17,793 bases of DNA from Bugula neritina. Its lineage: Eukaryota > Animalia > Bryozoa. Every line of letters begins with the position of its first letter. Positions within the stretch are counted from its first letter, which is position 1. Both the position numbers and the translations under genes were made by a program. Where the stretch lies: positions 1 to 17,793 of the forward strand of contig CAXIUT010000029.1 in the NCBI GenBank assembly GCA_964035545.1, read 5' to 3'. Shown here in pieces: positions 1-17,793 of this stretch. The notes below the pieces were generated by a model. It worked only from the letters and a program-made list of their open reading frames with translations. It searched no databases and had not been told where the DNA came from.

Positions 1-81
1 CCCAACCCCAACCCCAACCCCAACCCCAACCCCAACCCCAACCCCAACCCCAACCCCAACCCCAACCCCAACCCCAACCCC
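1..81 (-). repeat. Left telomere, (CCCCAA)n
   Basis: Perfect C4A2 repeat at the window start, the Tetrahymena-type telomeric repeat. Confidence 0.98.
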
Positions 82-139: not shown

Positions 140-976
140 ATGTCAAAGTTATTATTCATACTAGGACTACTGATCTTCACTTCTTGCAAATAAGTAGTAG
201 TTGACGCCAACAAAGAACCTTATCAAGCTCTAAACGACGTATTTACCAATGGAATTGAAACATCTGATAACTGTGATGACAAAATCAAACATATCGCTAT
301 CTAAGCAGATCCAATTCTCAAAAGAAATGTCTTTCTCTATTCTCTCCATGTAGATAACACCAAAAACTATGCAGATGGCGATCGTTGCACTGGCGATTAC
401 AGTCGACAAAGATGCTAAACTTCTGTTGTTCCCAGTTCTCCAGCTTGGATGCATGGAGATAAAGGAAAAACCTTTACCTATGCCTGGAAATTATACCTTG
501 ATTCTAATTTTCAAAGTAATACTCATTTTTGCCATCTCCATCAAATAAAACTAGATGGAAAAGATGTAGGCACCCCTAATTTGACTTTAACTGCCAGAAA
601 AGATATGCAGCTATAAAACTAAGGAAGAATTTTAGATAAAGTGCCTATGATTTCATTCAGAGGTGAATGGATTCAAATTCGTTAAAAGATAACATATGAT
701 GTTAAAGGCTGTCTTGATTTTACTGCACATAGAATCAGAGATGGGTATAGATTATTAAGTTACAAAGGATGTGACATTGAACTTGATAACAGAGGACAAA
801 TGATTAGACCTAAATTTGGATTTTATAGAAGTTTGCAAGATAAACAAACATTGAAGTCATAATCAGTTCGAATAGTTGATCTCTGTATTGGATAAAATGA
901 TGCCTGCAACTATAGTGCTTTTGGATAAAAGATTAATTAGACTCAGTAATCATTTTTGCAGCAAGAAATTGAATGA
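140..976 (+). CDS. Secreted polysaccharide-lyase-like (beta-jelly-roll, PF14099-like) protein, 278 aa, intronless
   Basis: Open from ATG140 to TGA974-976 when TAR is read as sense. Signal peptide MSKLLFILGLLIFTSC. Motifs DGDRC..SRQRC[TAA]T, FTYAWKLYL, FCHLHQIK, PNLTLTARK and IRPKFGFYRSL recall bacterial polysaccharide-lyase-family proteins (DRQRNE, HLHQIK, RPKWGxYRSL). Confidence 0.75.
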
Positions 977-1156
977 TTAAATCATTGATAATCTATCACA
1001 TAAAATATACTTATATCAATAATAAGATATAGAATGAAAAAATTATTTATTCTGATGCTCGGGAAGACCAAAATTTGGTTTTTATCGAAATATCACAAGA
1101 ATAAAAAAATAGAATGATTAATATATTTTATCATATGAATATTAAAAGAATAAAAA

Positions 1157-3638
1157 TCATATATCTGTGGTTACTTATTTGACTAAATTAGATTGTATTC
1201 CTTTTTTTCTTGTAGGTATATCAAATCGAAATGCTTCAGGCTGAATATCTACTATCGTAGACATATTAGTCAAAAGATATTGCGTGTATTCATAACTAAG
1301 ATTGAGAGGCCTTGCTACTTTTCTTTGCCTGTATTTATTTGCTAATTTTGGCATATTTGAAGCAATATAATTTTACTGCTTTCTAGAATTGAAAATAGAA
1401 GGCGTAATTGATGGCAACTGCAAAGCTGGTTTCGATTTCGGTAAAGCATAATGCGGTATTATTTTTTATTTATACTGTTTAACCATCAACTATTTATCAA
1501 TCGCACTAAGATCCTCAGTCTAACTCTACCCATCAGATTCCTAACTCAACTAGTTATATTTTTTCAATTTGATTTTACTACTTTACTGAACAATTTATTT
1601 TCTTAAAGAAGAAAAATCAATACTAGAATTACAAATTAACTATCGTTTAGCTATAGTTCTAAAATTGATAGTAGATTTTTGATTAGCAGCCTTACTAAAA
1701 AAATTATAATTTCTATTCATAATCTGCAAATATTTAAAATAAGATGATAATCCACTAGCTAACTCCCTCCCGAATTACTTCCATTAGGGCACGCTCATAG
1801 ATTTCCTCTCCTCTTCGTTGTTTTTATCTCGGTATAAAGCATAGGAAGTTTATATCGTATATGCAGGTATCTTTAACTTCTTTATAAAATATCCTCTAGC
1901 TGTATTTACTTTGTATTATTATAATTTAAATTTTGACATTTAGTATTTGAAATATTTGCTTATTCTGTCCATTATTTTAGGAAATATTCTGCATTATATA
2001 TAGTTTTCATTTTTCTAGTCTATCTATGGACCATAAACAAATGAATTTGTCTGACTCGAGTGACCATGCATATCCAAAAAACCTATGAAATTCTAACCAT
2101 ACTAAGTCTGATAAGTTTTGCCCAGCTACTTAAGAGCAGTAGTTTCAGGAAAAACGGTATCATCTACTTTATTAAACGATCGATTGAGATCATCTCCAAG
2201 ATAATCTAGATAACTATATTTATACTTGTTCTGAAATTGCCAAAAACTACTCCATCTGGATTAAGCATAGGCACTATTTTGATAACATTTTTAGACAAAA
2301 ACTATTCATAACTCTACTCGCCATGTAGTAACTCTTTTATTATTCCGTTGATAATATAAGAACTACAAGTTTAACTTGGATGAACTCTTCCTGAAATAAG
2401 TATAAGTTTTTTTTTATTTTGATTGTTTTTTCTTTATTTAGCTGCTCCTTTTGTTATCGTGAGTAGTGGAACAGCCAATCCTGTAATACTATGAGTAAGC
2501 ACATCTATTTTGAAGTTGGGCGAGTGTTAGTAGTATTATAGATCTTTTAGAAGTTTACTATATGTATAGGGAGGTATAAGACTTAGATATGTCTATTGAT
2601 GAGGTTTCAGTGATATTTAGAAGGTGATTTTGAATTTATTTTTACCAAAAGGTTGAACTTATACTTCTTAATCCAGTATTTTCCAATCTGTTTTAGGAAG
2701 ATTATACTTACAAAATATTTTTTGTCCATGCTATATCATCCTAAATTTTCTTTTTACATTACAAATATTAATCCTAACTCGTTTTTGCTCGTGATATCTA
2801 TTGGTAATTTGAAAATAGAACCAACTTTGATGTCCTTTTGTATTAGTATCAATTCTTAAGAATAAATTATACTAATTTTATGATATTTTGAAGACACTGT
2901 CTAGATTACCACTTTAAAAATCACCTATGAAATCTATAATATTCTATTTGTTTTATTTGTTTGTTTTAGGTTATATTTATTGTTTATTTTTTTATATTTG
3001 CGTTTTCAAAGATCTGTTATATTTACTTTATAAAAAAGTTGATTTTTTATTGGTTTTGAGATGTTGATAAAAAGTATAAGTATTTGCTATTTTAGGCTAT
3101 CGATATACTAGTTCAGATTATGGATAAGGCTACATTTATTATTTTATAATTGCCTACTGCTGAACTATGTCATTTGGTATTTATAAATTTTATGTTGTTT
3201 CTGTTCTAAATACTAACAGAAGTACCTCTTATCTTTTATTATTATTGTTTCAATTGTTTACTAGAGATGAATGATTGATGAGTTTTTATTCAGTTTAGGA
3301 GGCTTTTTAAAGATAACAGAATCAGGATATTTATGTTCTTTTTAACTGTCTGATAATTCTTATTCATTTTATATCAAAGGATATCTATTTTTAAGATGCT
3401 CTTTTGATTTCATAAGATTGTCACTCTTTCTATCGAGTACTTTCAGTTCTAAATATATCATTATTTGTACTGAAACTGACTTTCTAACTGGAGTTATAGC
3501 GATGTTTCTTTTTTTTAGATGAAATACTAACATAAGGATTACAACTTGTTTGAAGATGATTTTCTTCTTCAATTACTTATTAGGAAATAGAAGGACGTTA
3601 AAAACCTTATTCAATTTACTAATCTTCAAGATAGCCAT
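1157..3638 (-). CDS. Cytosolic carboxypeptidase (M14D, CCP/AGBL tubulin-deglutamylase family); introns 3206-3225 and 2206-2225; 5' end uncertain
   Basis: Ordered motifs DF[TAA]SGNL, DTNTKGHQSWFYF, PPYTYSKL, GRVHPS[TAA]T, VPMLNPDGV..GNFRTNYLGDDLNR (after splicing), FLDMHGHS, FVYG, TARG and YTI[TAA]TS. Stop is TGA at 1157-1159. ATG3638 gives an open frame, but an alternative start at 3655 is possible. Confidence 0.9.
2206..2225 (-). other. 20-nt spliceosomal intron (GTATAAATATAGTTATCTAG)
   Basis: Removing it restores the frame and the conserved GNxR....G.DLNR motif. Confidence 0.92.
3206..3225 (-). other. 20-nt spliceosomal intron (GTACTTCTGTTAGTATTTAG)
   Basis: GT..TAG ends. The downstream frame meets a TGA just upstream of it, and removal joins it to a long open upstream frame. 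Confidence 0.75.
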
Positions 3639-3770
3639 ATTTTTTTTGTATACATCTCCTATAATATTTATTTCGATAAAATTATCAAAGAGGGCTCAAA
3701 TAATTAATCACCTTATCACATATATTAATAATTACTTTGTTTTCTTAATAATAAAAAATATAACTTAGAA

Positions 3771-5291
3771 ATGTAAGAGCAACTCTTTGACCCCAAACAA
3801 ATAAACCTACCTTTTACTGTAGCAATCATAAAACCAGATACAGTCCTCTAATCTGATAAATTACAAGAAGTTATTACATTTATTGAAAATTCTAATGAAC
3901 TTGTCATCAAAAATATGTTCCAAAGATAGTTACTTAAAGAATAAGTTGTTAACGTATTTTATAAACACTAAAATAAACCTTACTTTTAAGATATCATTCG
4001 CTATATGATGAGTGGATAGAGTTGCGTGATGATATTGGTCAATGCAGAAGGAAGCGAAGGAGATCCGATAGCTAAATGGAAAAAAATGATAGGAATAATG
4101 AATCCTTAAGAAGCGAAAAAAGCCAGTCCTGAAAGTTTAAGAGGTAAATATGGTAAATCAGTAATAAAAAATGAATTTCATGGAAGTGATAATCTTATCG
4201 ATGCTAACAAATAAAGAAAAATATTCCATTTTAAAGTACCACAAGAACCACCCAAATTCTAATATGACCCTTATAAAGTAACACTTAAATCAATTCAACA
4301 GTTCTTAAGACCACCTAATCTTTAACATTCATGTATCAACTAAAGAATGGATCTGATGGCCACCTATGGTCCCATTGTTGATTGGCATTCCATTGAACAA
4401 TGTTTCTGTGTTTAGTGCAAACCTTTCGCTAGAGATATTGCCAAAAGAAGAAAGATGTCAAATAAATTACCTCCTAAAGTTCTTAAATAAGTCTAAATAT
4501 CAGAAATATACAACTAACTTTGCCAAAAATGTCAATTTCATTGTAGTAATTTTACTCATCTACCAGGAGGAAGATAAATGCAGCATTTACTTACAGATAA
4601 TTAACTCAATTAGCTCGGTAAACAAATAAACAAAGGATAATTGATTGATCTCCTTACTATTGAAAAAGGATCTACTGCTAAAATTATGGTATAAAAGATA
4701 TCGCCAAGAGAACCAAACTAAACCCAATATAATATTGATTTCTTCAATATTCTTATCAAACAAATAGAACCAGATTACTACGAAAGATATACCTTTATCT
4801 AACTACAAAATCTCATACTTTAAGATAGAAGAATCAGAATGACATATTGGGTTGCTAAAATGACAGGAAAATCAGTTGATAGATTTCCACCTGTAACTTC
4901 TCTTGATAATACTCTCACTCAAGAACAACTTAGTGATCCTAAAGGACCATATTTTACTCTAAATCGAAAACTACCTTTGACTCTGCTTATCAAACCAGAA
5001 CAAATTAAAAATATTCCTCTTTTATATGCTCCTAGCATCATAGACAAGAAGAAATTAGCCCAAATGGAAGAAAATCTCGTGATTGAGAAACTATTACATA
5101 GAAATTTAACCAAAGTTACTCAGGTGGGATTGAAAAGCGAAGGAATTAGAGAAGCAGTTTCTCTTTTACGACCCTATAACGAAGGAAGACATGGAGATTG
5201 GGACAACTATGCTAATTTAAAAGGAAATAGTACTAAGGGAGATGTTGGAGGCAAGTATATGAACGGATATATGACAAAACAATCAAAATGA
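3771..5291 (+). CDS. Nucleoside-diphosphate-kinase-domain protein (group II NME-like) with a long C-terminal extension, 506 aa
   Basis: Single frame from ATG3771 to TGA5289-5291. NDK motifs FTVAIIKPD, KPYF..II.YMMSG, WKKMIG..NP, SLRGKYG and NEFHGSD (catalytic His kept), then DANK[TAA]R. Confidence 0.88.
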
Positions 5292-5379
5292 TCAATAGAT
5301 AAATAAAATTATTCTATATACTTTAAATAATTTACTTAAAACTTTTAAAATAAATAGTTTAATATTGATGTAATGCAAA

Positions 5380-8300
5380 TCAATTGTATCTTTATTCGAA
5401 AAGAATCTTCATTAGATCGGCATTGGTCCAATAATCTTGATCGATAGTTGAAGAAAGAGGGTTTTAGAAAGGAAATTGGTCTGATCTTATTTACTTGACT
5501 AAAGTCTGAGCCATTTAGAGATCTGAAAAGAAGTTTTTAAATTGAGGATTAATTCTGATAGTGATTTAGAAAGTAGGAATAAATCTTAAATTCGGGAAAT
5601 AAAAAACAAAAAGAAACCAATATTGAGTACCATCATAGTACCTGTAATCTGCCTAGATACTAGATAACTGTGAACTTTTAATTTCAACTTGCAAAAGATT
5701 CCAACTAGGTACACCATAATTTTATAGATATTTATCAGATAACATATTCATAGAAACACCTTGAAAGATCTTCTGATTGCCAAGAACTGTTTTTTATAAA
5801 GTTAAAATTGAAGTTGAATATCTAGGCAAGATACAAGTGGTCACTGTTCTACCATCTTCAAGCCATTACGTACTAATTTAGTAACTATTGGCACATGCTT
5901 AGCAAGTATTAGCTGCATGGCAGAGGATACAATGAAAGGTACATAGTTGACATTTGTAGTTAGTATCTCTATATTGCCCTGGAGCACATCTAGCTAGACA
6001 ACGACCATTTCTGTAGATTCCATCTGTGCAAGTGAGACACTACTGAGCTCCTGGACCTGAACAAGTTGTACAAGTTGAATGACATTTCATACAATTTTAT
6101 CTAGGACCATAATAACCATCAATACAAACACAAGTCACCAAGGCTGCTATATATCGACTGTTAGGATTGCATAGCTGGCATTATCCATTAATGATAAAAT
6201 AAGCATAGTTACAGACACAATTTTTTCCATTCCAGAAAGAATTAACACCACAACTATTATCACCGAAGTTATTGTTATTATTTTCATAGTCATATAAACA
6301 TTATCCATTGATTAGGGTGAGTCCGCTATTGCAGACACATTTCTGAATATCAGAATTCCATTGACTATTCGCAGGACAATTACTTATACACCAACCATTA
6401 ACAAAAGTAAGTCCTTGGTTACAGACACAAGTATTCAGAACGAAGTTCCATTAGCTATTAGCGGGACATCGAACACATCCTATTTGAGTGGTAAAATAAT
6501 CTAATCCGCAAACGCAAATTCCATTTGAAAACATTCTGTCAGCAGTATTGCATTGAGTACATAAACTAGTTATGTTATCTATGATTTGACCTGATGGACA
6601 GATACAGTTGTTGTTGACTAAAATTTTACCTCCAGTACAAGTATTTCTCACACTATTGCCTTGATTAGAAATTTATGCGACACACTGACGAGTTTGTGCG
6701 TCTAAGATAAGAGGAGAAATGCAAAAACAATTTCCACTTGGGTTACGATTGCTATGAGTAGGACATGACACACAGTCATTTCCAATAAGACCAAAAGGAC
6801 GAGGGCATACACATACTCCAATACTGAAAACGAAGTTAGGCGGGCACTAGTTTTAAGAAACACATTGATTGGTAACTTATGATAGAGAATAGTTCGGTAT
6901 GCATCCACACTTTCCTTAAACTTTTATCGCATTGATTCCACAAGTAACATAACAGATTCCATTGACCATCAGATAGCCAATATTGCAGACACATTCGTTT
7001 CCATTGTGATTTTGGTTGAGACCACATCTGTTTTAACTTGCACACTGTCCGTTATTAAGAGTGCCACTAACACAAGTTAAACATTAATTAACATTAGTTC
7101 CTAAACAAGTAGCACAAGTTGAATGACATCTAGAACAGTTGTTCCAGTTTCCAAAGAATCCATCATTACAAAAGCAAGTTTTCTGAGAAAAGTCATATTG
7201 ACTGTTAGGATCACACTGTTGACATTTATTATTGATAGAAAAATATCCTGCCTTACATGAGCATGTAGAAACATTCCATACTTCATTATTTCCACATGTA
7301 TTAGTGCACTGGCCATTGGACAAGGTAGGTCCTTGAATACAATCACAGCGATTGGAACTCCAAGTCGAATAAGGTTGGCATGGCTGACAGATACCATTGA
7401 TAATGTGATAGTTAGGATTATTACATTAACAGGTCTGACTAAATTAATTCCAATTGCTGTCAGAAGGACAACTTAAGACGCACTGACCATTTGATTAGAT
7501 ATATTCTGATATACATTGGCATTTTTGAAGTTGAGAGTTCCATTGACTGTTAGTTTGACAACTAGAAACACATTTATCGTTTTAGACAGCAAAACCTTGG
7601 TTACAGACACATTGTCCAGTAGTTTAGTTATACTAGCTATTAGCTGGACACTTAACGCATCTATTTTGAGTTTCAATATAGCCTTAAGCACATACACAAA
7701 CTCCATTAGCAATCATTCTATCCAAAGCTCTGCATAGTGTACATTAGTTAGTAAAAGTATCAATAACATACTCTCCTTGACAAACACATGAATTTCCATT
7801 CCATATTTTTCCACTTTTGCAAGTCGGATTGGAAACACATTGCTGTGTTTGAGAACTTAGATTAAAACCAGTATAACACTAACATTTACCATTTGAACTT
7901 CTAATGCTATTAGTTGGACAATTAACACATTTATTTCCTATTAAACCAAATGGATAAGAACAAGTACATTTGTTATTAAGCCATTTGAAGTTGGGTTAGC
8001 AAGGGTTTTAAGTAATACATCTACTTCCAGATATTATTTAATTTTATTCACAAAAAAGACAAGTTTTATCTATAATTGTACCCTTGTTTTGTTAACAAAT
8101 GTCTTTTGAAGTGCATTTTGATGGGCATTTTGAACCAAAACAAGTTATTCCATTTGGAACTTTTGAAATAAAGCCATTTCCACTCAAGACAGTCTTTCCA
8201 CTCTAAAGAGTTTGAATGCCTATCAACTAGTATGGGTAATCAGATCCTACTGAAGGGTCAAAATAATGATATTAAAATTAAGAAGTAGTTTCAAAAGCAA

Positions 8301-8969
8301 CATAAGTGATGAACAGGATCTCAATTGGAGGAGAACTGTCGAGACTGATGATGGACTTGATAACACCAGAGTTCGTTATAACAACTGAGCTAAGAGAAGC
8401 AGTGAAAGAGTCAGCTGAAGTTTTGATTCCGCAGATAGCAGTGATGACTCTATGTTCGTTGTTTGACTGTTTGAAGTTGGGAATGCTGAAATCGTGAGTG
8501 ATTCCTCCCACAGCTGAATTGAATTAAATAAAGTTTGCCGCAATGATGTATGTACCCAGATAGAACTCATCTCTGTTGCTCATCATATATGAAATTACGA
8601 TCATATTCCAGCTGTTGTCATTATCAATTAGAAGCTCTATTACTCCAGAGTTTCCTGATTTGCTCTTTCCTCTTATCGAGAAATCCATTCCATTGCTTGT
8701 AGCTAAGGCAGTAAAGCTTGAGGTTGCTAAATAAAAATCAACTTACAGGCAGCAATGTTAACTCTTGAACCTTTTCCAGAAGTTGCAAAGATATTAAAGC
8801 TATGAACTCTGTTCTCAGGGGTATTGACACGGTTATTTTGAAAAAGGATGGTCCCTTAATCTAGAAAATCTTGACTAAGAGCTGTTTTGCTTATGCAAGA
8901 TTGTGTATTAAAGGATTCTAAGAGAAGGGTTAGAAGAAACAAAGTCGATAAGATTTTATTGTTTCTCAT
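5380..8969 (-). CDS. Secreted Cys-rich repeat protein, paralog B (about 1189 aa): signal peptide, family N-domain, EGF/furin-like repeats, C-terminal beta-domain; intron 8727-8746
   Basis: ATG8969 (MRNNKILSTLFLLTLLL) to TGA5380-5382. Length is divisible by 3 after removing the 20-nt intron. Many CxC..GY/F...NG.C and C..C..C.GP...QCLTC repeats. Confidence 0.85.
8727..8746 (-). other. 20-nt intron (GTAAGTTGATTTTTATTTAG)
   Basis: Restores the frame. Same phase-1 position as in the three paralogs. Confidence 0.92.
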
Positions 8970-8987
8970 GATTTAATATTGTAGTTT

Positions 8988-9010
8988 ATAATGATAACTC
9001 ACTGGATTTA
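8988..9010 (-). promoter_or_regulatory. Candidate upstream element shared by the Cys-rich paralogs (+ strand ATAATGATAACTCACTGGAT)
   Basis: 18/20 match to 16419-16438. The core ACTGGATTTA also occurs at 12156-12165. All lie within about 60 nt upstream of the paralog ATGs. Confidence 0.55.
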
Positions 9011-9496
9011 CACCCAATAATGTTGGATCGGTAAATAAATCATCAGGATTGGAAAATAATATCAAAATTAAAGAAAGAAAAATTAGGTAAATAATCTATG
9101 ATGATTTTTGATTTTGTAGAATTATCAAGTGAAAAAGTAGTATCGAAAATATTATCTTTAGAATCGATTTTATCTATGATTTGATTAAGATAAATCTACC
9201 ATTTTTAAGTATGCATAATAGCAAATTTATCTTATTTCTCGTTTAAGGTTAATTCTTATTAATGATTACTATAAAAGTGTGTGATTGTTTTAATCAGAAA
9301 GCTCTCTCGGTGAGCACAACTCAGCAATAAAGGATCTCAAGAGAAAATTACAATGAGAGAGTTAATGATAGTTTCACAGTCTTTGCTAAAGTAAAAATAA
9401 GAACCTTAGATTACTTTATTAAGAATATAAAATGTTAAAGAGTTGATATAGTTATGCTTTTTATTTTCATAAATGCTATGCGAATCAAGACGATCA

Positions 9497-12127
9497 TCAT
9501 AATTAATTTCTACACTATCCATTAACTAGAACAAATCCTTTTTTACAAGCACAATAAGCTCCTTTCCAGACTTAATTTGGACCACATCTACTTTAATTAT
9601 TTTCATCAACATGGATACATTCTTGATTTACCAAGGAAAGTCCTCCTTAACATTTACATTATTAATCTGAAAAGCTCCACTAACTATAGCGAGGACAATT
9701 TCCTTTGCAAAATCCATCAACAAAAGAAAATCCTTAAATACAATCACATTTTTAAAGTTCAGAATTCCATTAACTATTTTAAATACAAAAAACACATCCT
9801 TTTGTTTCTGTAAGAACAGCATCTTTTGCACAGATACAAGTGCCATTTTACGATACTCTTCTATCTGGAGCAATGCACCAAGTACAGTTATTGGTTATAA
9901 TATCAATAATTTGACCTATTGGACAGACACACTTCTCTCCTCTGTAGATTCTACCTCCCGTACAGGTTAGAGGCTAGCACTATTGATTCTAGATGTTTAA
10001 AGTATAGCCAGTAAAGCACTAACAAAACCCAGTTGAGTTTCGAATACTCCTAGATGGACAGCTAATGCAGTTGTCTTTGACTAGGCCAAAAGGAACTGGA
10101 CAAGTACATTTTCCATTGATACTTTTAAAGTTCTACTAGCATTATTTTTAAAGTTAGCAATTTACTTAGTTCCTAATTAAAGACTTATCCTGGGAAACAC
10201 TGACACTAGTCGTCGATAACAACTCTGTCATTTTAACACTTAAGGTAACAGCTCTCATTGAACATCAGGTATTCACTGTTGCAAGCACAAGATGTCCCAT
10301 TCCAAGAGGCGTTATCTTGGCAACTTTGTACACACTCTCCATCGACTTCAGTCAAATCTTCATCGCAGACACAGTAAGTTCCATTCCAGGTTGAATTAGA
10401 ATGACAAGCTTGGCAAGAATCATTTATCAAGTGAAGAGTGGGATTACTACAGTCACATCTTTAAAGGTCTTCGTCCCAATTGCTACCAGTAGGACACTTA
10501 TTCACACACTAGTCATTGAAGAGTACTAATTCTCCAGTGCAGATGCAACGACCAATGACTGAGTTCCATAGACTCTGATTCGGACACTTGATACATCCTT
10601 TTCTAGTTGTAATATAATCAAAAGCACAAACGCAAATTCCATAAGAAAGCATCCTATCACTAGTATCGCATAAAGTACATTAGTCAGTAATAACATCGAT
10701 AACCTAACCAGTTGGACAAACGCAAGCACTTCCATTCCATTATCTTCCGCCTGTACATTATTCATAAGAAGGAAATGGAATAGGCGCACACTCGAGAATT
10801 CGAGGGATAAGGAGAAAGCCACTAAAGCATTAACAGATTCCATCAGGACTTCTAGTACCATTGGCGGGACATTTGACACACTTATTTTCAATAAGACCAA
10901 AAGGATGTAAGCAAACACACTTTCCATTTTTATTGATAAAATTAGAAGAACATTGAGTTTAAGGAACGCATTAAAGAGTATAAATGTTGAGAGGATAGCC
11001 ATTATAGCACCTACAGAAGCCAGTTTCATTACGAGAAGTATCACCTTCGCATTTAAGACATCTATTTCCAACCAAGCCGAAAGGATCAGGGCAATAGCAC
11101 TAACCATTTTATATTACAAAATTTAATTAACACCTTATCTAAGATACGCATTGCTTTTAGGATATTCTCTGCCCATCATCACAAAATATACAGGTCTAGT
11201 CGATTATTACACCTTTATTATAAGTGCAAATATTCTTTGAGGGACATTTTGATGGACATCCTTAACCAAAGCAAGTCACTCCATTTGGAACTTTTGAAAT
11301 AAAGCCATTTCCACTTAAGACAGTCTTTCCACTTTAAAGAGTTTGAATGCCTGTCAACTAGTATGGGTAATCCGAGCCAACTGAAGGGTCAAAATAGTGA
11401 TATTATAACTGAGAAGTGGTACGAGAACTATCAGCAATATACTATATATCAAAAGCAACGTAAGTGATGAACAGGATCTCAACTGGAGGAGAACTGTCGA
11501 GACTGATGATGGACTTGATAACGCCAGAGTTTGTTATTACAACTGAGCTGAGAGAAGCGGTGAAAGAGTCAGCTGAAGTTTTGATTCCGCAGATAGCAGT
11601 GATGACTCTATGTTCGTTGTTTGATTGTTTGAAGTTGGGAATGTTGAAATCGTGAGTGATTCCTCCCACAGCTGAATTGAATTAAATAAAGTTTGCCGCA
11701 ATGATGTATGTACCCAGATAGAACTCATCTCTAGAGCTGGCAAGGTAGGAGATGACAATAACACTCCAACTGTTGTCATTATCAATTAGAAGTTCTATCA
11801 CTCCTGTGTTACTAGCTAAACCTTGATAGCCTCTAATAGAAAAATCCATTCCATTGCTTGTAGCTAAGGCAGAAAAGCTTGAGGTTGCTAAATATAGAAA
11901 AACTTACAGGCAGCAATATTCAGTCCATCTTTTCCAGAGGATGTCCATACATTGAAGCTGTGGACTCTATTCGCAGGAGTATTGATTCTATTATTCTTTG
12001 CACGAAAGGTTCCTGAGTCCATGAAGTCTCTGCTAACATGTCTGCGACTAATGCAAGGCTGTGCATTGAAGAATTCTGAGAGAAAAATCAAAAGGAGAAA
12101 AGTCGGTAAGATTTTATTGTGTCTCAT
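9497..12127 (-). CDS. Secreted Cys-rich repeat protein, paralog C (about 870 aa), lacking the C-terminal domain; intron 11888-11907; apparent 1-nt frameshift near 10160
   Basis: ATG12127 (MRHNKILPTFLLL). Near-identical to paralog B over part of the N-domain. Cys repeats continue to TGA9497-9499 only if one base at 10159-10160 is skipped. Confidence 0.78.
11888..11907 (-). other. 20-nt intron (GTAAGTTTTTCTATATTTAG)
   Basis: Restores the frame. Position conserved among the paralogs. Confidence 0.92.
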
Positions 12128-12198
12128 GATCAATATAAATATATCATAATATCTGACTGGATTTAGAAATAAAAAGGTTCATAATTTTAAATATAAAA

Positions 12199-12291
12199 GG
12201 GGTTGGGGTTGGGGTTGGGGTTGGGGTTGGGGTTGGGGTTGGGGTTGGGGTTGGGGTTGGGGTTGGGGTTGGGGTTGGGGTTGGGGTTGGG
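12199..12291 (+). repeat. Internal telomeric tract (GGGGTT)n, 93 nt, right-end orientation
   Basis: Perfect G4T2 repeat flanked by unique AT-rich DNA. Confidence 0.97.
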
Positions 12292-12380
12292 ATAGATTTA
12301 TTAATAAAAAAGCATTTGTCATTCTTTGAGTTAGAATATGGAAGTATTAAGTTAGTTCATTGATTTTTATGAATCATAGG

Positions 12381-13282
12381 TCAATTGGATATGATAGAGC
12401 ATGAGTTTTCAACAATAGTCCCTTGCTTTTTGCAGTTTTACTCAGAAATACATCTATTCCTAGGACAGCTAAGACTAGTACACCTGATTCCATTCAGAGA
12501 TGAAGAGTAGTCTGCTCCAGTATAGATAAGTTTTTGATTTGATACTCCATCAAGTCCTTTCCATATATAAGGAGATCTACCTCCTGAATAAAAAGCAACA
12601 TCAATCGGAGAAGCTAGTGGAATAATGACATAGCTTATATGTATCGACTAAAAGGGCTAGGAACCCTAGAGGTAGAGAGGCATTTCCATGGTTTGGACAG
12701 TTGGAAACTTTATTCTTGGATAAATAGTAACATTGAAGTTTTTAGCAGATGTTTTGACTCCACTTAGATAGTAGGTATAGTTAAAGTCGGTGTTATCTGG
12801 GAGGACAGGTATTGTCAAATTGTACCTCGATAGCCCGTTACCTGAATTAGAATGGAAGTCGAATAATGGTATTAAGCGACTTTCCATAAAAGTGTCATTT
12901 CTAGCACTAACTAAGTAAGATATCTTCATAAACTAGAAGTCACCATTGTCCATTTCAAGAACGACTTTGATCTTCTTGGCAACTTAGCTTTTAGACCCGC
13001 TGATTCTGAAATCCATCCCATCGGATCTGTCTCCCTAAAAGCTAAAAAAAGCTGAATAAGTTATCAAATACCTGCAATAACCTTTATATCAGGAGAGTCA
13101 ATGCCAGTTCCTAATTAATAAATGTGTTCTCTGACTCCAGGTTAAGCCTTGTTGCTTATAGCAATAAAAAAACCTGTTTATAGTTGATCAGATGGCTCAC
13201 CAAGCGAACATAGCTCAGTATTGAAAGATTTCAAGAGAAGAATCATCAAAAAAAGAGTTTGAAGTGTCTTTTTAGTTTTCAT
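12381..13282 (-). CDS. Short divergent paralog E (293 aa): signal peptide, family N-domain and one Cys module, no repeat array; intron 13052-13071
   Basis: ATG13282 to TGA12381-12383. Shares GMDFxIxG, ISYLVSAR, SGVKTSA, ISYV and NGIRC...CP..C with paralogs B, C and D. Confidence 0.82.
13052..13071 (-). other. 20-nt intron (GTATTTGATAACTTATTCAG)
   Basis: Restores the frame. Same position and phase as in the paralogs. Confidence 0.88.
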
Positions 13283-13374
13283 GTAGTAATAGATATGAAT
13301 ATAATATCATAAGTATTCAAAAAGATGATATATTATTAATAAGGTAATGAATGTAATGCAAATCAGGAAGAAGA

Positions 13375-16300
13375 TCATCCGAAAAGTTAAAGAACTAACG
13401 CATCAGTAACTCCTTAGTCTTTTGAAGAAGAGGGTAAAGAATCAGAAGATGGTTGAATTCGTAAACCTGCTGTTCGAGGAAGATTTCTGGTATTTGCTAT
13501 TGGGGCTGCTGAAGCTTGAACTGGGAATGAATCAGGTCCAAATGCTCCATTCAGAGATTGAGCCATGTCACTTGCTGAGAAAAAGTTTGCATGAATTGGA
13601 TTGATTCTAATGTCGTATTGGAAAGAAGGCACGAATGTGGCTGATGGGAAGAGGAAAGTAATAATGAACCAATATTGGGTCGGAGAAATGTATTATTGAG
13701 TAACTGTGATGGCTGTAAACTGACTATTAACAGTTACTAAGAAGAGACTATCACAGATATTGCATCCATTGGCAAGAATAGCTGATGGCATTGTACTCAT
13801 AGCTACTCCCTGGTAAATCTTTTTATTACCCAAAACACTACTTCTAAGAGTGATTATTGAGCCAGTACTAGGAGGTTGAATGCAAGTAGTTACAATTGAT
13901 CCACTAACCACAACTGAGTTGGCTGAATATCCAACAGCACAGTTTTCACAACTATTAGCTGCAAAACATAGAATACAATTGGCAGTGCAAGGCTGACAGA
14001 CATTGTTTGTATCTCTATACTAACCAGGTTGACAGTTAGTTAAACAATATCCGTTGCTTACGGTGCCACTAACACAGGTTAAACATTGATGAGCACCAGC
14101 ACCTTAACAAGTAGCACAGGTCGAGTGACATTGAATACAGTTATCCCAGGTTCCAAAGTAGCCATCGTTACAGATACAAGTTTGTTGAGCTGAATTGTAT
14201 TGACTATTCGAGTCACAAAGTCGACATTGTCCGCTGATTACAAAATATCCAGAATTACAAACACATGAGACTCCATTCCAAGTCGCATTAGCTCCACAGC
14301 TATCCACACATATTCCATTGACTTTAGTATAACCTCCATTGCAGACACATTAGTTACCATTCCAAGCTGAATTAGAAGGACAAGGTTGACAGATACCATT
14401 AATCAGGTAGTAATTGGCTGTATTACAGACACATCTTTGAAATTGTGAGTTCCAACTGCTACCAGACGGACAATTTACTACACATTGATTATTTGATAAG
14501 ATATATCCTGACACACAGACACATTGATTTCCATTCCAAACTGAGTTAGAAGGACAAGGCTGACAGACACCACTAATCAAGTAGTAATTGGCAGTATTGC
14601 AAACACATCTTTGAAGTTGAGAGTTCCAGCTGCTACCAGATGGACAATTTACTACACATATTCCATTGACCTTAATATAACCGCTATTGCAAACACATTA
14701 GTTACCATTCCAAGCTGAATTAGAAGGGCAAGGTTGACAGACACCATTAATCAAGTAGTAATTGGCTGTATTGCAAGAACAGCCTTGAAGTTGAGAGTCC
14801 CAGCTGCTACCAGATGGGCAATTCACAACACATTGATTATTAGATAAAATAAATCCTGCTATGCAGACGCATTGATTTCCATTCCATTGACTATTGACTG
14901 GACACTGAATGCATCCATTTTGAGTTGTAATATAATTTGAAGCACAGACACAGACTCCATTTGAGATCATTCTGTTAGAAGCAGTACAAAAAGTGCATGA
15001 ATCAGTGATAGTATCGACTATTTGGCCACTTGGACAGACACAAGAGTTGCCATTCCAGATTCTTCCTCCTGTACAAGCTGGATTTATAGTACACTGAATG
15101 AGTAGGGTATTCAAAGTGTAACCACTAATACATTGACAAACTCCATTTGAGTTTCTGAAACTATTGGCTGGACAAGCAACACAGTTATTTCCAACTAGAC
15201 CATAAGGAGGTAAACAAACACACTGGCCATTGACCCAAGTATAGCTAGGTTGACAATTATTTAGCACACATTGATTTGTTGTTGTGGAACGTACATAACC
15301 TGAAATACACTAGCATTGGTTGTTTATAAGAACTGCATTGGATCCACAGATAGCGTAACAAACTGAGTTGATCCTTGTGTATCCACTATTACAGACACAT
15401 TGATTTCCATTCCAATTTTAATTTTGACCGCATGGGTTAGATACACATTGTCCATTTGAGATTGTTTCTCCTGAGGCACAGATGAAACATGTATTTCCTA
15501 TTCTTGTGCCCTGGTTTAGTGTGCATGCTGAGATTGAAAGACAACCAGTAGGACATCCAGAACCAACACAGGAGATGCCGTTTTGGTTAGATGGTGTGAA
15601 AGCATTACCAGCTAACACTGAATTTCCACTTTGAAGAGCATCTATTCCAATTAGTTGATAAGGAGCATTTGATCCTACACTTGGATTGAATCCTGAGTAT
15701 TGGATGGGGGAAGATTTATCAAAGGCTACATAGGTGATGAAGAGAAACTCAATTGAAGGAGATGATGATAGATTGATGACTGTTCGAATAGTTCCTGAAG
15801 AAGAGAAAATAGCAACTGATTGAAGAGAAACTGTGAAGGAAGTAGCTGATGTCTTGATTCCACTGATTTAGATGATCACAGTGTGGTCATTGCCTGTTGT
15901 AAAGCTAGGAATGATGTGATTATAAGTCATAGCTCCATTAGTTTGAAGGGCATATGGGGGAATCAAATAAGAGCCAAGATAAAACTCACTTCTGCCACTT
16001 GCCAAATAGGAAACTCTAATAGTGCTCCAACTGTTGTCATGATCAATTAGAAGCATTATTAAGCCAGAATTAGAATTTTGACTTCCCCAGATGGAGAAGT
16101 CCATTCCACCATTAGAGGCTGAAGCGGAAAAACTTGAGGCGGCTAAATAAATTAAAGATTACATGCAGCAACTTGCAATCCTGTAGAAGGAATAGCAAAA
16201 CTAACAGTGAAGGGGAAGCTATGAAGCCTATTCTGAGGAATATTATCGTTGTCGTTTTGAACAAAGTAGATCCCAGATTTTAGACGATCATTAGATCCAC

Positions 16301-16382
16301 TGAGAGGGCATAGTTGGGCATTCAAAGAACCAGCTAGGAGAGATACAACGAGAAGAGTTAAGAGTATTTGATTGGATTTCAT
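13375..16382 (-). CDS. Secreted Cys-rich repeat protein, paralog D (995 aa), same architecture as B; intron 16143-16162
   Basis: ATG16382 (MKSNQILLTLLVVSLLAGSLNA) to TGA13375-13377. Joins the ORF-track fragments through TAR codons. The C-terminal domain (VLGNKKIYQGV, TQYWF, IRINP, MAQ) matches B. Confidence 0.88.
14341..14887 (-). repeat. About three tandem 174-bp (58-aa) coding repeats inside paralog D
   Basis: The anchor GAAGG(A/G)CAAGG recurs at 14375, 14549 and 14723. Unit: CVVNCPSGSSWNSQxQRCVCNTANYYLINGVCQPCPSNSAWNGN. Confidence 0.9.
16143..16162 (-). other. 20-nt intron (GTAATCTTTAATTTATTTAG)
   Basis: Restores the frame. Position conserved among the paralogs. Confidence 0.92.
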
Positions 16383-16418
16383 GATTTAATTATATTTACA
16401 GCTTATCATCACAGATTA

Positions 16419-16444
16419 ATAATGATAGCTTACTGGATATCCAG
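16419..16444 (-). promoter_or_regulatory. Candidate upstream element of paralog D, overlapping the palindrome CTGGATATCCAG
   Basis: ATAATGATAGCTTACTGGAT is 18/20 identical to the element upstream of paralog B. Confidence 0.55.
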
Positions 16445-16678
16445 ATAAAATTGTTATGACTTTAAGCCTTAATTGATTGGATAAGAATAAAGAATGATTG
16501 AGGTGATATCCACTAGAGTTAATCATGGAATTTGATGGAATATGATGAAAGGTAAGGTAAAGTTGAGGACGTTATTCGGTGAAATTGGGAGTTTTTGAAG
16601 AATAAATAAAAATTAGAGAAATATCAAAGGGAAATAAGTTCATTTGATTGGAAATTAGCTTCTTAAACAAAAAGTGAA

Positions 16679-17173
16679 ATGATCATTTTATACAATCTAA
16701 TAGTATTTTTGGTAAAAAATAAAAGGTCTAAAAAATCTAAAATAGATAAATGTACGACTAGTGAATAAAAAACATAATTATGTTTAATTATTTTATCAAA
16801 ATAGTCATCTTTTCCTTAATAATATTTATTTAGTGATCAAAAAGATAATTTCCTCATTAAAACTTACGGAAGAAAAAAGTAAATAAGAATGATTTTATTG
16901 ATCAAAAAGATATTGAGTAACTTGATAAATCATAAAAGCAAAAATATAGAATAAAAAAAAACTTAAAACTTTATCCAATAGATCAAATATCTCGACCAAT
17001 AAATTCAAGAACCAGAACTATAAGAACTACAACTATTAATAGCTTATATATTTAGATAAAAATTCAGAATTGAAAATGAACTCTAAGGAATATGTAGTTC
17101 GATTTCAAAAAAGAAACAGATGTAGGAAGTTCAGATAAAATAGAAATTAATCTAAATAAAATAATACTAATGA
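16679..17173 (+). CDS. Hypothetical E/K/I/L-rich protein, 164 aa (start uncertain)
   Basis: The frame is free of TGA from 16583 to 17170. No recognisable motif, and long ORFs arise more easily when TGA is the only stop. Confidence 0.4.
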
Positions 17174-17380
17174 TAGATTTAATGATTCTATTTTATTGTT
17201 AATTCGAATTCTCTTACTATATAAAAGAAAAATGCTTTTTGTTATTTTATTTCTTTAAATAAAATCTTTCAAATTTAACATCCTTTCAAGATTCCAGAAA
17301 CAAAGTTAATTTTTATTATTAATTGAGTATTTATTGACTGATATTTAAATTTACAAAGTTTACCAGAACAAATATAAACA

Positions 17381-17661
17381 TCAATTCAAAGACTAATCTT
17401 TTTTCATCACTAATATCTCTCCTTCTTCTGTCATAGTGACTGTCCATTATTCTTTGCCATTAATAACTAAATAAGTTCATAGTTACAGCTTATTCTTTGG
17501 AGTAAAGAGTTTCCAATAACACTTCGAGAATACCTCAAAGCCTAGCGAGAACGTTGGTATATTTATTTAGCTTTTGGTCTGTCAGACTCATGCTTGAGTT
17601 GCTTGATACTGCCTGAATGATCAAAAATCCAAAAGGAAGTAAGACTTTTGATATCCTCCAT
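17381..17661 (-). CDS. Small roadblock-fold, LAMTOR4-like protein, 86 aa; intron 17467-17486
   Basis: MEDIKSLTSFWIFDHSGSIK...LQRISFINGKEEWTVTMTEEGEILVMKKDESLN*. The size and C-terminal beta-strand pattern resemble LAMTOR4 (FKRLSVVFG..TLLVTV....VFVVKR). The gene call is firmer than the product call. Confidence 0.6.
17467..17486 (-). other. 20-nt intron (GTAACTATGAACTTATTTAG)
   Basis: Matches the GTA...ATTTAG 20-nt consensus of the other introns and yields a plausible protein C-terminus. Confidence 0.8.
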
Positions 17662-17706: not shown

Positions 17707-17793
17707 GGGGTTGGGGTTGGGGTTGGGGTTGGGGTTGGGGTTGGGGTTGGGGTTGGGGTTGGGGTTGGGGTTGGGGTTGGGGTTGGGGTTGGG
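17707..17793 (+). repeat. Right telomere, (GGGGTT)n
   Basis: Perfect G4T2 repeat running to the window end. Confidence 0.98.

Follow-up and report, generated by a model that had tools for sequence, protein, structure and literature searches.

The stretch analysed here, called the window below, is the whole of contig CAXIUT010000029.1 (C38; 17,793 nucleotides, or 17.8 kb), one of the 321 contigs of the 216 Mb assembly filed under Bugula neritina (GCA_964035545.1), which was searched here as the host assembly. It carries seven protein-coding genes and a small open frame between two terminal telomeric tracts, together with a third tract of this kind in its interior (Table 1). We are concerned with the genetic code in which these genes are written, and in particular with the amino acid encoded by TAA and TAG (together TAR), which recur within the reading frames. 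A first-pass annotation made from the sequence had assigned glutamate to both codons and left TGA as the sole stop; every codon that it cited is found in place and in the coding frame.

Table 1. Coordinates of the genes, cited codons and repeat tracts of the window (a residue in brackets is encoded by TAA or TAG)
Feature	Position	Strand	Details
Left telomere, C4A2 repeats	1..81		Same tract at the start of most small contigs
Gene 1, secreted polysaccharide-lyase-like protein, 278 aa	140..976	+	10 TAA, 1 TAG; TGA 974-976
TAA codon, RQRC[E]	416-418		
Gene 2, cytosolic carboxypeptidase (M14 and its N-domain), 652 aa	1157..3135	-	27 TAA, 19 TAG; TGA 1157-1159
Acidic tract N-TAG-LS-TAG-ESDG-TAG-S-TAG-TED	1511-1555		In frame
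TAA codon, YTI[E]TS	1850-1852		
TAA codon, HPS[E]T	2371-2373		
TAG codon, N[E]YNL	2872-2874		
TAA codon, F[E]SGNL	2914-2916		
Gene 3, NDK-domain protein, 506 aa	3771..5291	+	20 TAA, 4 TAG; TGA 5289-5291
TAA codon, ANK[E]RKIF	4212-4214		
Gene 4 (paralogue A), secreted Cys-rich repeat protein, 1189 aa	5380..8969	-	Intron 8727-8746; TGA 5380-5382
Gene 5 (paralogue B), Cys-rich protein	9497..12127	-	Intron 11888-11907; TGA 9497-9499
Internal G4T2 tract, right-hand-telomere polarity	12199..12291		Separates a 12.3-kb unit from a 5.5-kb unit
Gene 6 (paralogue D), short, N-terminal domain only, 293 aa	12381..13282	-	Intron 13052-13071
TAG codon	12648-12650		
Gene 7 (paralogue C), Cys-rich repeat protein, 995 aa	13375..16382	-	Intron 16143-16162; TGA 13375-13377
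Small open frame, about 76 aa	17431..17661	-	Starts at the ATG where the range of the first-pass annotation (140-17661) ends
Right telomere, G4T2 repeats	17707..17793		Repeat tract in the window

The longest open frame of the window is 203 codons when all three standard stops are applied, compared with 1144 codons when TGA alone terminates; in 200 shuffles of the sequence, the longest TGA-only frame averages 377 codons and never exceeds 701. A run of 1189 codons would lack TGA by chance with a probability of 9e-12. Complete models could be drawn for six genes, each from ATG to TGA; among their 3913 sense codons there are 106 TAA and 38 TAG, and TGA does not occur inside any of them. The share of glutamate among their codons is 1.9% if they are read conventionally and 5.6% if TAR is included, and TAA (106) is then the commonest glutamate codon of the window, ahead of GAA (57), TAG (38) and GAG (19). 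That all genes end in TGA, as initially stated, is true of the seven genes of the window, provided that a one-nucleotide indel is allowed in gene 5. As assembled, the frame of this gene is broken near 10159 by one surplus base, which is absent from the contigs of all four public runs compared; without this base, the Cys-rich frame reaches its TGA (9497-9499) and encodes 869 residues.

Several TAR codons can be placed opposite residues of solved structures or of paralogues. Pieces of the gene 2 product match Pfam PF18027 and PF00246, and removal of a 20-nt intron (2206-2225) restores the sequence ...NPDGVVFGNFRTN joined to YLGDDLNRSF. With TAA read as glutamate, the FESGNL motif of the N-domain, the HxxE zinc site, NPDG...DLNR and HGH are all present, which is the CCP/Nna1 type of carboxypeptidase, and the structures of human CCP5 and of bacterial CCPs align with the protein. 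The TAA of the HxxE site (2371-2373) lies opposite the glutamate of HPGE[T/S] in the four PDB chains aligned (human CCP5 and three bacterial CCP-type enzymes). The earlier warning that the carboxypeptidase would be misread with table 6, the ciliate code in which TAR encodes glutamine, follows directly from this structural alignment, since a glutamine would then take the place of a zinc-ligand glutamate. PDB searches with the FESGNL window and with the catalytic YTxE region of the carboxypeptidase returned no aligned structure. At the F-E-x-GNL position (TAA 2914-2916), the eight ciliate carboxypeptidase paralogues use GAR (GAA or GAG; three genes), TAA (four) or TAG (one), and at the EY[DN]L position (TAG 2872-2874) TAG is found four times, at a site where two paralogues and the host gene encode glutamate. 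Gene 3 matches Pfam PF00334 and has the catalytic histidine of HGSD followed by the conserved glutamate that pairs with this histidine; this glutamate is encoded by TAA (4212-4214), which lies opposite Glu in 4/4 solved NDK structures (PDB). The TAG of gene 6 (12648-12650, paralogue D) aligns, as had been proposed, with glutamate in paralogues A, B and C. For the RQRxE region of gene 1 (TAA 416-418), no solved structure was aligned in a PDB search; the protein itself has a weak match to Pfam PF14099, obtained from one 65-aa piece.

Gene 3 could be compared with a larger set of relatives. Its stop-free C-terminal 155 residues, used as a query, retrieved 45 relatives among 1.8 billion proteins, the 11 longest of which were aligned to the read-through translation of the gene, a column being counted as conserved at at least 70%. 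Eight TAA fall in conserved columns, namely six in Glu columns, one in an Asp column and one in a Gly column, and those at 4602, 4719 and 4821 correspond to a glutamate present in 11/11 orthologues. Conversely, 6/9 conserved Glu columns are encoded by TAA. The conserved Gln and Lys columns of the 11-orthologue alignment are free of TAA, and the nine conserved Lys columns use AAA, AAG or, once, GAA, but never TAR. The nearest database relatives of the protein (67-90% identity) are filed as fragments of 50-170 aa, as would be expected if gene callers stop at TAA and TAG in organisms with the same code.

At the codon level, gene 3 was aligned with its orthologues at three loci, which come from assemblies of unrelated metagenomes or runs and also contain in-frame TAR. 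The partners of its TAA codons in these orthologues are GAA or GAG (37), TAR (16), Asp codons (9), the Gln codon CAA (2) and, once, a Tyr codon; no pairing of TAA with Lys is recorded. For the TAG codons they are GAR (9), TAR (12), Lys codons (3) and Gln codons (3). This is the pattern that would be expected if TAA, TAG, GAA and GAG were synonymous.

The other contigs of the assembly provide a second set of genes. Contigs C1-C9 (10-36 Mb each), in which the tubulin genes are split by introns and have no in-frame stops, belong to the host eukaryote. The small contigs, as far as sampled, are mostly AT-rich and start with C4A2 repeats. The window is built like these telomere-bearing small contigs, and is therefore very probably ciliate macronuclear DNA co-sequenced with the host. 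Identical or near-identical DNA is found in runs filed under three organism labels by three studies; the presence of the ciliate DNA under several host labels fits an epibiont or other cobiont. We aligned the tubulins of the small contigs (alpha on C16 and C87, a canonical beta on C10 and a divergent beta on C255) to the host tubulin exons. Thirty of their 38 aligned TAR codons lie at a host Glu (22 TAA and 8 TAG), and none at the 66 host Gln or the 63 host Lys positions; none is recorded at a conserved Tyr. A look-up of the exact beta-tubulin sequence returned no record. The ciliate eRF1, encoded on C314 (minus strand of the piece 16900-18700, 140-1474 of this piece), was aligned to solved eRF1 structures. 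TAG lies opposite Glu at FEPFKP, KEKK, RMEKRHNY and VAExAVQ, and TAA at E55 (human Glu55), GENG, IELS and QEKK. Outside this pattern stand a single TAG that faces Arg and the TAA codons of three variable sites; at one of the three (QQRLKLY), the human protein has Gln and that of S. pombe has Glu. In the alpha-tubulin, the beta-tubulin, eRF1 and the NDK-like protein with its orthologues, TGA ends the frame near the C-termini of the homologues.

It is thus very likely, judging from these sequence comparisons, that the DNA of the window comes from the macronucleus of a ciliate and was sequenced along with a much larger host genome, and that this ciliate reads UAA and UAG as glutamate and UGA as its only stop (translation table 30). 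The glutamate meaning of TAA put forward in the first-pass annotation is upheld by the 22 tubulin sites, the 6/8 conserved columns of gene 3, the NDK and HxxE sites and the 37 pairings with GAR versus two with CAA. That of TAG is upheld by the eight tubulin and four eRF1 sites, by the interchange of codons among the carboxypeptidase paralogues and by nine pairings with GAR versus three with Gln. The reservation that the evidence for TAG was the weaker part holds true within the window (2872-2874 and 12648-12650), but no longer once the sister contigs and the paralogues are added, with which it becomes solid.

We then considered the decoding machinery. Two tRNA genes with a CUA anticodon are located on telomere-bearing contigs (C10:16787-16858 and C256:3981-4052), and each folds into a 72-nt cloverleaf followed by an oligo-T run. 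A search of metagenomes with a pattern made of their shared T-arm and a UUA anticodon revealed 16 contigs that carry a tRNA(UUA), identical to the C10 tRNA(CUA) at 61/72 positions; two of these contigs are syntenic with the C256 locus. Of the two anticodons that the first-pass annotation had proposed to look for, CUA is represented by two genes in the assembly, whereas UUA was seen only in the metagenome relatives. In orthologous frames on the tRNA(UUA) contigs, TAA corresponds to Glu codons 169 times and to Gln codons 20 times, and TAG to Glu codons 132 times; these relatives use the same code. The C10 tRNA(CUA) has U1-A72, C2-G71, C3-G70 and the GGTTAGGA D-loop in common with the host tRNA-Glu, and the acceptor stem of tRNA(UUA) (ACCUAGA/UCUGGGU) is near that of the host tRNA-Glu (UCCCAGG/UCUGGGA). 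The ciliate eRF1 has RASQIKD in place of TASNIKS (NIKS replaced by QIKD) and retains the YxCxxxF motif. Changes in the N-terminal region of eRF1 are known to narrow stop-codon recognition (PMC10553269); our literature searches found no published description of peritrich eRF1 motifs. UAR would be read by a family of suppressor tRNAs with a Glu-like acceptor stem, and an eRF1 with RASQIKD would presumably no longer recognise UAA or UAG.

At the locus syntenic with C256, the metagenome relatives have a tRNA(UUA) and the present ciliate a tRNA(CUA). This C256 copy is far more diverged than its counterparts, with 54-55/72 identities to the UUA genes of the relatives versus 68/72 among those genes. 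One tRNA locus has switched from UUA, as in the relatives, to CUA here.

Several observations weigh against the assignment of TAR to glutamate and have to be set beside the alternatives. In the alignment of the Cys-rich paralogues, TAR lies opposite Gln 11 times and opposite Glu four times; a few TAR stand in conserved columns other than Glu (Gly at 4341, Arg in eRF1); no tRNA(UUA) was found in the assembly by four whole-assembly pattern searches; the overall similarity of tRNA(CUA) is about equal for host tRNA-Glu, Asp, Gly, Lys and Gln (covariance-model scores of 59.8 bits for Glu, 59.7 for Gly, 58.4 for Asp, 57.5 for Lys and 57.1 for Gln); the anticodon arm of tRNA(UUA) (GGACUUUAAAUCC) is near that of host tRNA-Gln; and no RNA run is among the public runs found to carry the ciliate DNA. 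If TAA and TAG meant glutamine, as in the standard ciliate code (table 6), the anticodon arm and the matches in the Cys-rich repeats (WNGN-TAA-CVC versus WNGNQCVC, and YPY-TAG-L versus APYQL) would be in line, and the table 6 users Tetrahymena and Paramecium have the same C4A2 telomere. The eRF1 TAA opposite the human Gln in QQRLKLY points the same way, but this site is Glu in S. pombe. CAA and TAA are one transition apart, and we would read the TAR/Gln matches of the Cys-rich proteins as frequent Gln/Glu exchange at variable surface sites, not as a second meaning of the codons. The alignment of this fast-evolving family was dropped as a test of Glu versus Gln, its TAR sites being mostly at variable positions. 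Glutamine is further contradicted by the tubulins, where TAR occupies 0/66 Gln positions and 30 Glu positions, by the three gene 3 TAA at glutamates invariant in 11/11 orthologues and by the exchange of TAA with GAR (37) versus CAA (2); it would also turn the catalytic glutamates of NDK and of the carboxypeptidase into glutamines. A split code of the kind used by Oligohymenophorea sp. PL0344, in which TAG is Glu and TAA is Lys or another residue, would have a precedent in the same ciliate class (PMC10553269), and the assembly did yield tRNA(CUA) genes and no tRNA(UUA). Neither BLAST nor a covariance model of the two CUA tRNAs turned up another member of the family or a canonical tRNA-Glu on the small contigs; the ciliate part of the assembly is thus incomplete, and the gap at UUA says little. 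TAA is found at 22 tubulin Glu and 0/63 Lys positions and in three invariant Glu columns of gene 3, and it exchanges with GAR (37) between orthologues with no Lys-codon exchange recorded. Both the glutamine code and the split code with TAA as Lys appear extremely improbable from these alignments and are rejected here.

Less credible still is the possibility that TAA and TAG are true stops and the genes decayed pseudogenes or products of sequencing error: the mere presence of the codons speaks for it and nothing further, and it is opposed by 144 TAR without one TGA in six long frames and by the same pattern in the essential tubulin and eRF1 genes and in orthologues from three unrelated metagenomes. 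The remaining alternative concerns the organism. UAR could mean glutamate in a ciliate that is not a peritrich, which would be a second, independent origin of the reassignment. No peritrich with multigene minichromosomes of 5-12 kb and C4A2 telomeres was found described in the searchable literature, nor did our searches find peritrich telomeres and chromosome sizes described at all. Conversely, UAR as glutamate is established for the Peritrichia, is so far known only there and, as PMC10553269 states, arose a single time. The occurrence of the ciliate as a cobiont of several hosts and its near relative from a marine biofilm metagenome (sample SAMN08714533) fit sessile peritrichs, and its introns, all tiny and of one length, agree with the narrow distribution of intron lengths described for three peritrich genomes (PMC13685798). 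A second origin seems unlikely to us, and only marginally less so if the lineage is taken to be one with a macronucleus made up of multigene minichromosomes, about 5-12 kb each. The C4A2 telomeres, the UAR=Glu code and the biofilm relative are hints from which we infer a sessile oligohymenophorean of peritrich type.

Table 30 is the code of the peritrichs Vorticella, Opisthonecta, Carchesium and Campanella. It agrees with the code proposed for the present ciliate (TAA and TAG as Glu, TGA as sole stop), with no difference in the code itself, and suppressor tRNAs with UUA and CUA anticodons would be a further common point; what the present ciliate sets beside it is TAA as the majority glutamate codon and an eRF1 with QIKD for NIKS. 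The code is already described, and the present case changes nothing known about it; the citation in PMC4967479 traces the first report of UAR as glutamate to Sanchez-Silva et al. (2003). Table 6, as used by Tetrahymena and Paramecium, likewise has TAA and TAG as sense codons and TGA as sole stop, and its users share the C4A2/G4T2 telomeres, but TAR is Gln in those organisms and Glu here. Oligohymenophorea sp. PL0344, with UAA as Lys and UAG as Glu (PMC10553269), belongs to the same ciliate class and has UAG as Glu and, putatively, its decoding by a tRNA(CUA) related to tRNA-Glu in common with the present ciliate, whereas UAA is Glu here. Finally, in Mesodinium (table 29) both UAR codons are also jointly reassigned to a single amino acid, but this amino acid is Tyr, which in our comparisons is limited to the one TAA/Tyr pairing in gene 3, with none recorded at the conserved tubulin Tyr positions.

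The main value of this assignment is correct annotation. About 300 small contigs of the host assembly would belong to a cobiont that needs translation table 30: the standard code fragments every gene of the cobiont, and table 6 makes each TAR-encoded Glu a Gln, including the carboxypeptidase zinc ligand and the NDK glutamate after HGSD. These contigs would also allow the rarest of the classic ciliate codes to be studied at the DNA level. Of interest in this respect are the majority use of TAA for glutamate, the altered NIKS motif of eRF1 and a tRNA family in which the acceptor stem is Glu-like and the anticodon arm Gln-like.

The four secreted paralogues of the Cys-rich family (A-D) all begin with a signal peptide, have their single intron at a common position and contain an N-terminal domain of some 230 aa; three of them extend into long Cys-rich EGF/furin-like repeats. 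The N-terminal domain has no Pfam match, and an ESM Atlas search gave only sub-threshold hits. The four genes lie on both sides of the internal telomere tract. Together with the intron of gene 2 (2206-2225), their introns (8727-8746, 11888-11907, 13052-13071 and 16143-16162) make up the five needed for the frames of the window; each is exactly 20 nt long, starts with GTA and ends in AG (four TAG and one CAG).

Internal telomere tracts of normal length (61-93 nt) and right-hand-telomere polarity are present in several contigs of 17-25 kb, namely at 12199-12291 in the window, 9690-9763 in C10, 5249-5309 in C11, 6405-6481 in C18 and 6210-6284 in C24; C27 (8447-8521) is the mirror case, with an internal tract made of C4A2. 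Each internal G4T2 tract closes in ...GGGGTTGGG, in the same phase as the tracts at contig ends, and is directly followed by unrelated sequence, with no second tract of opposite polarity. Such a tract would represent either a telomere fused to a telomere-less minichromosome end in real molecules or an artefact of the library or assembly. The runs that carry the ciliate DNA exist as short-read contigs only, and the contigs from four of these runs end at the internal tract of the window (12199-12291).

Other contigs are of a different nature. C73 (70.6 kb) is very AT-rich (17-23% GC in the stretches sampled), ends in tandem repeats of about 64 nt and contains two copies of an odd mitochondrial-type tRNA whose anticodon loop is shortened; the contig resembles a linear mitochondrial genome of a ciliate. 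The matches that were discarded from the whole-assembly searches for tRNA(UUA) were host repeats, a tRNA-Pro(AGG), this odd tRNA of C73 and two non-tRNA hits. In C214 (41100-45400), 13 tRNA genes of bacterial or organellar type lie within 4.3 kb, and this stretch is a further component of the assembly, neither host nor ciliate-nuclear.

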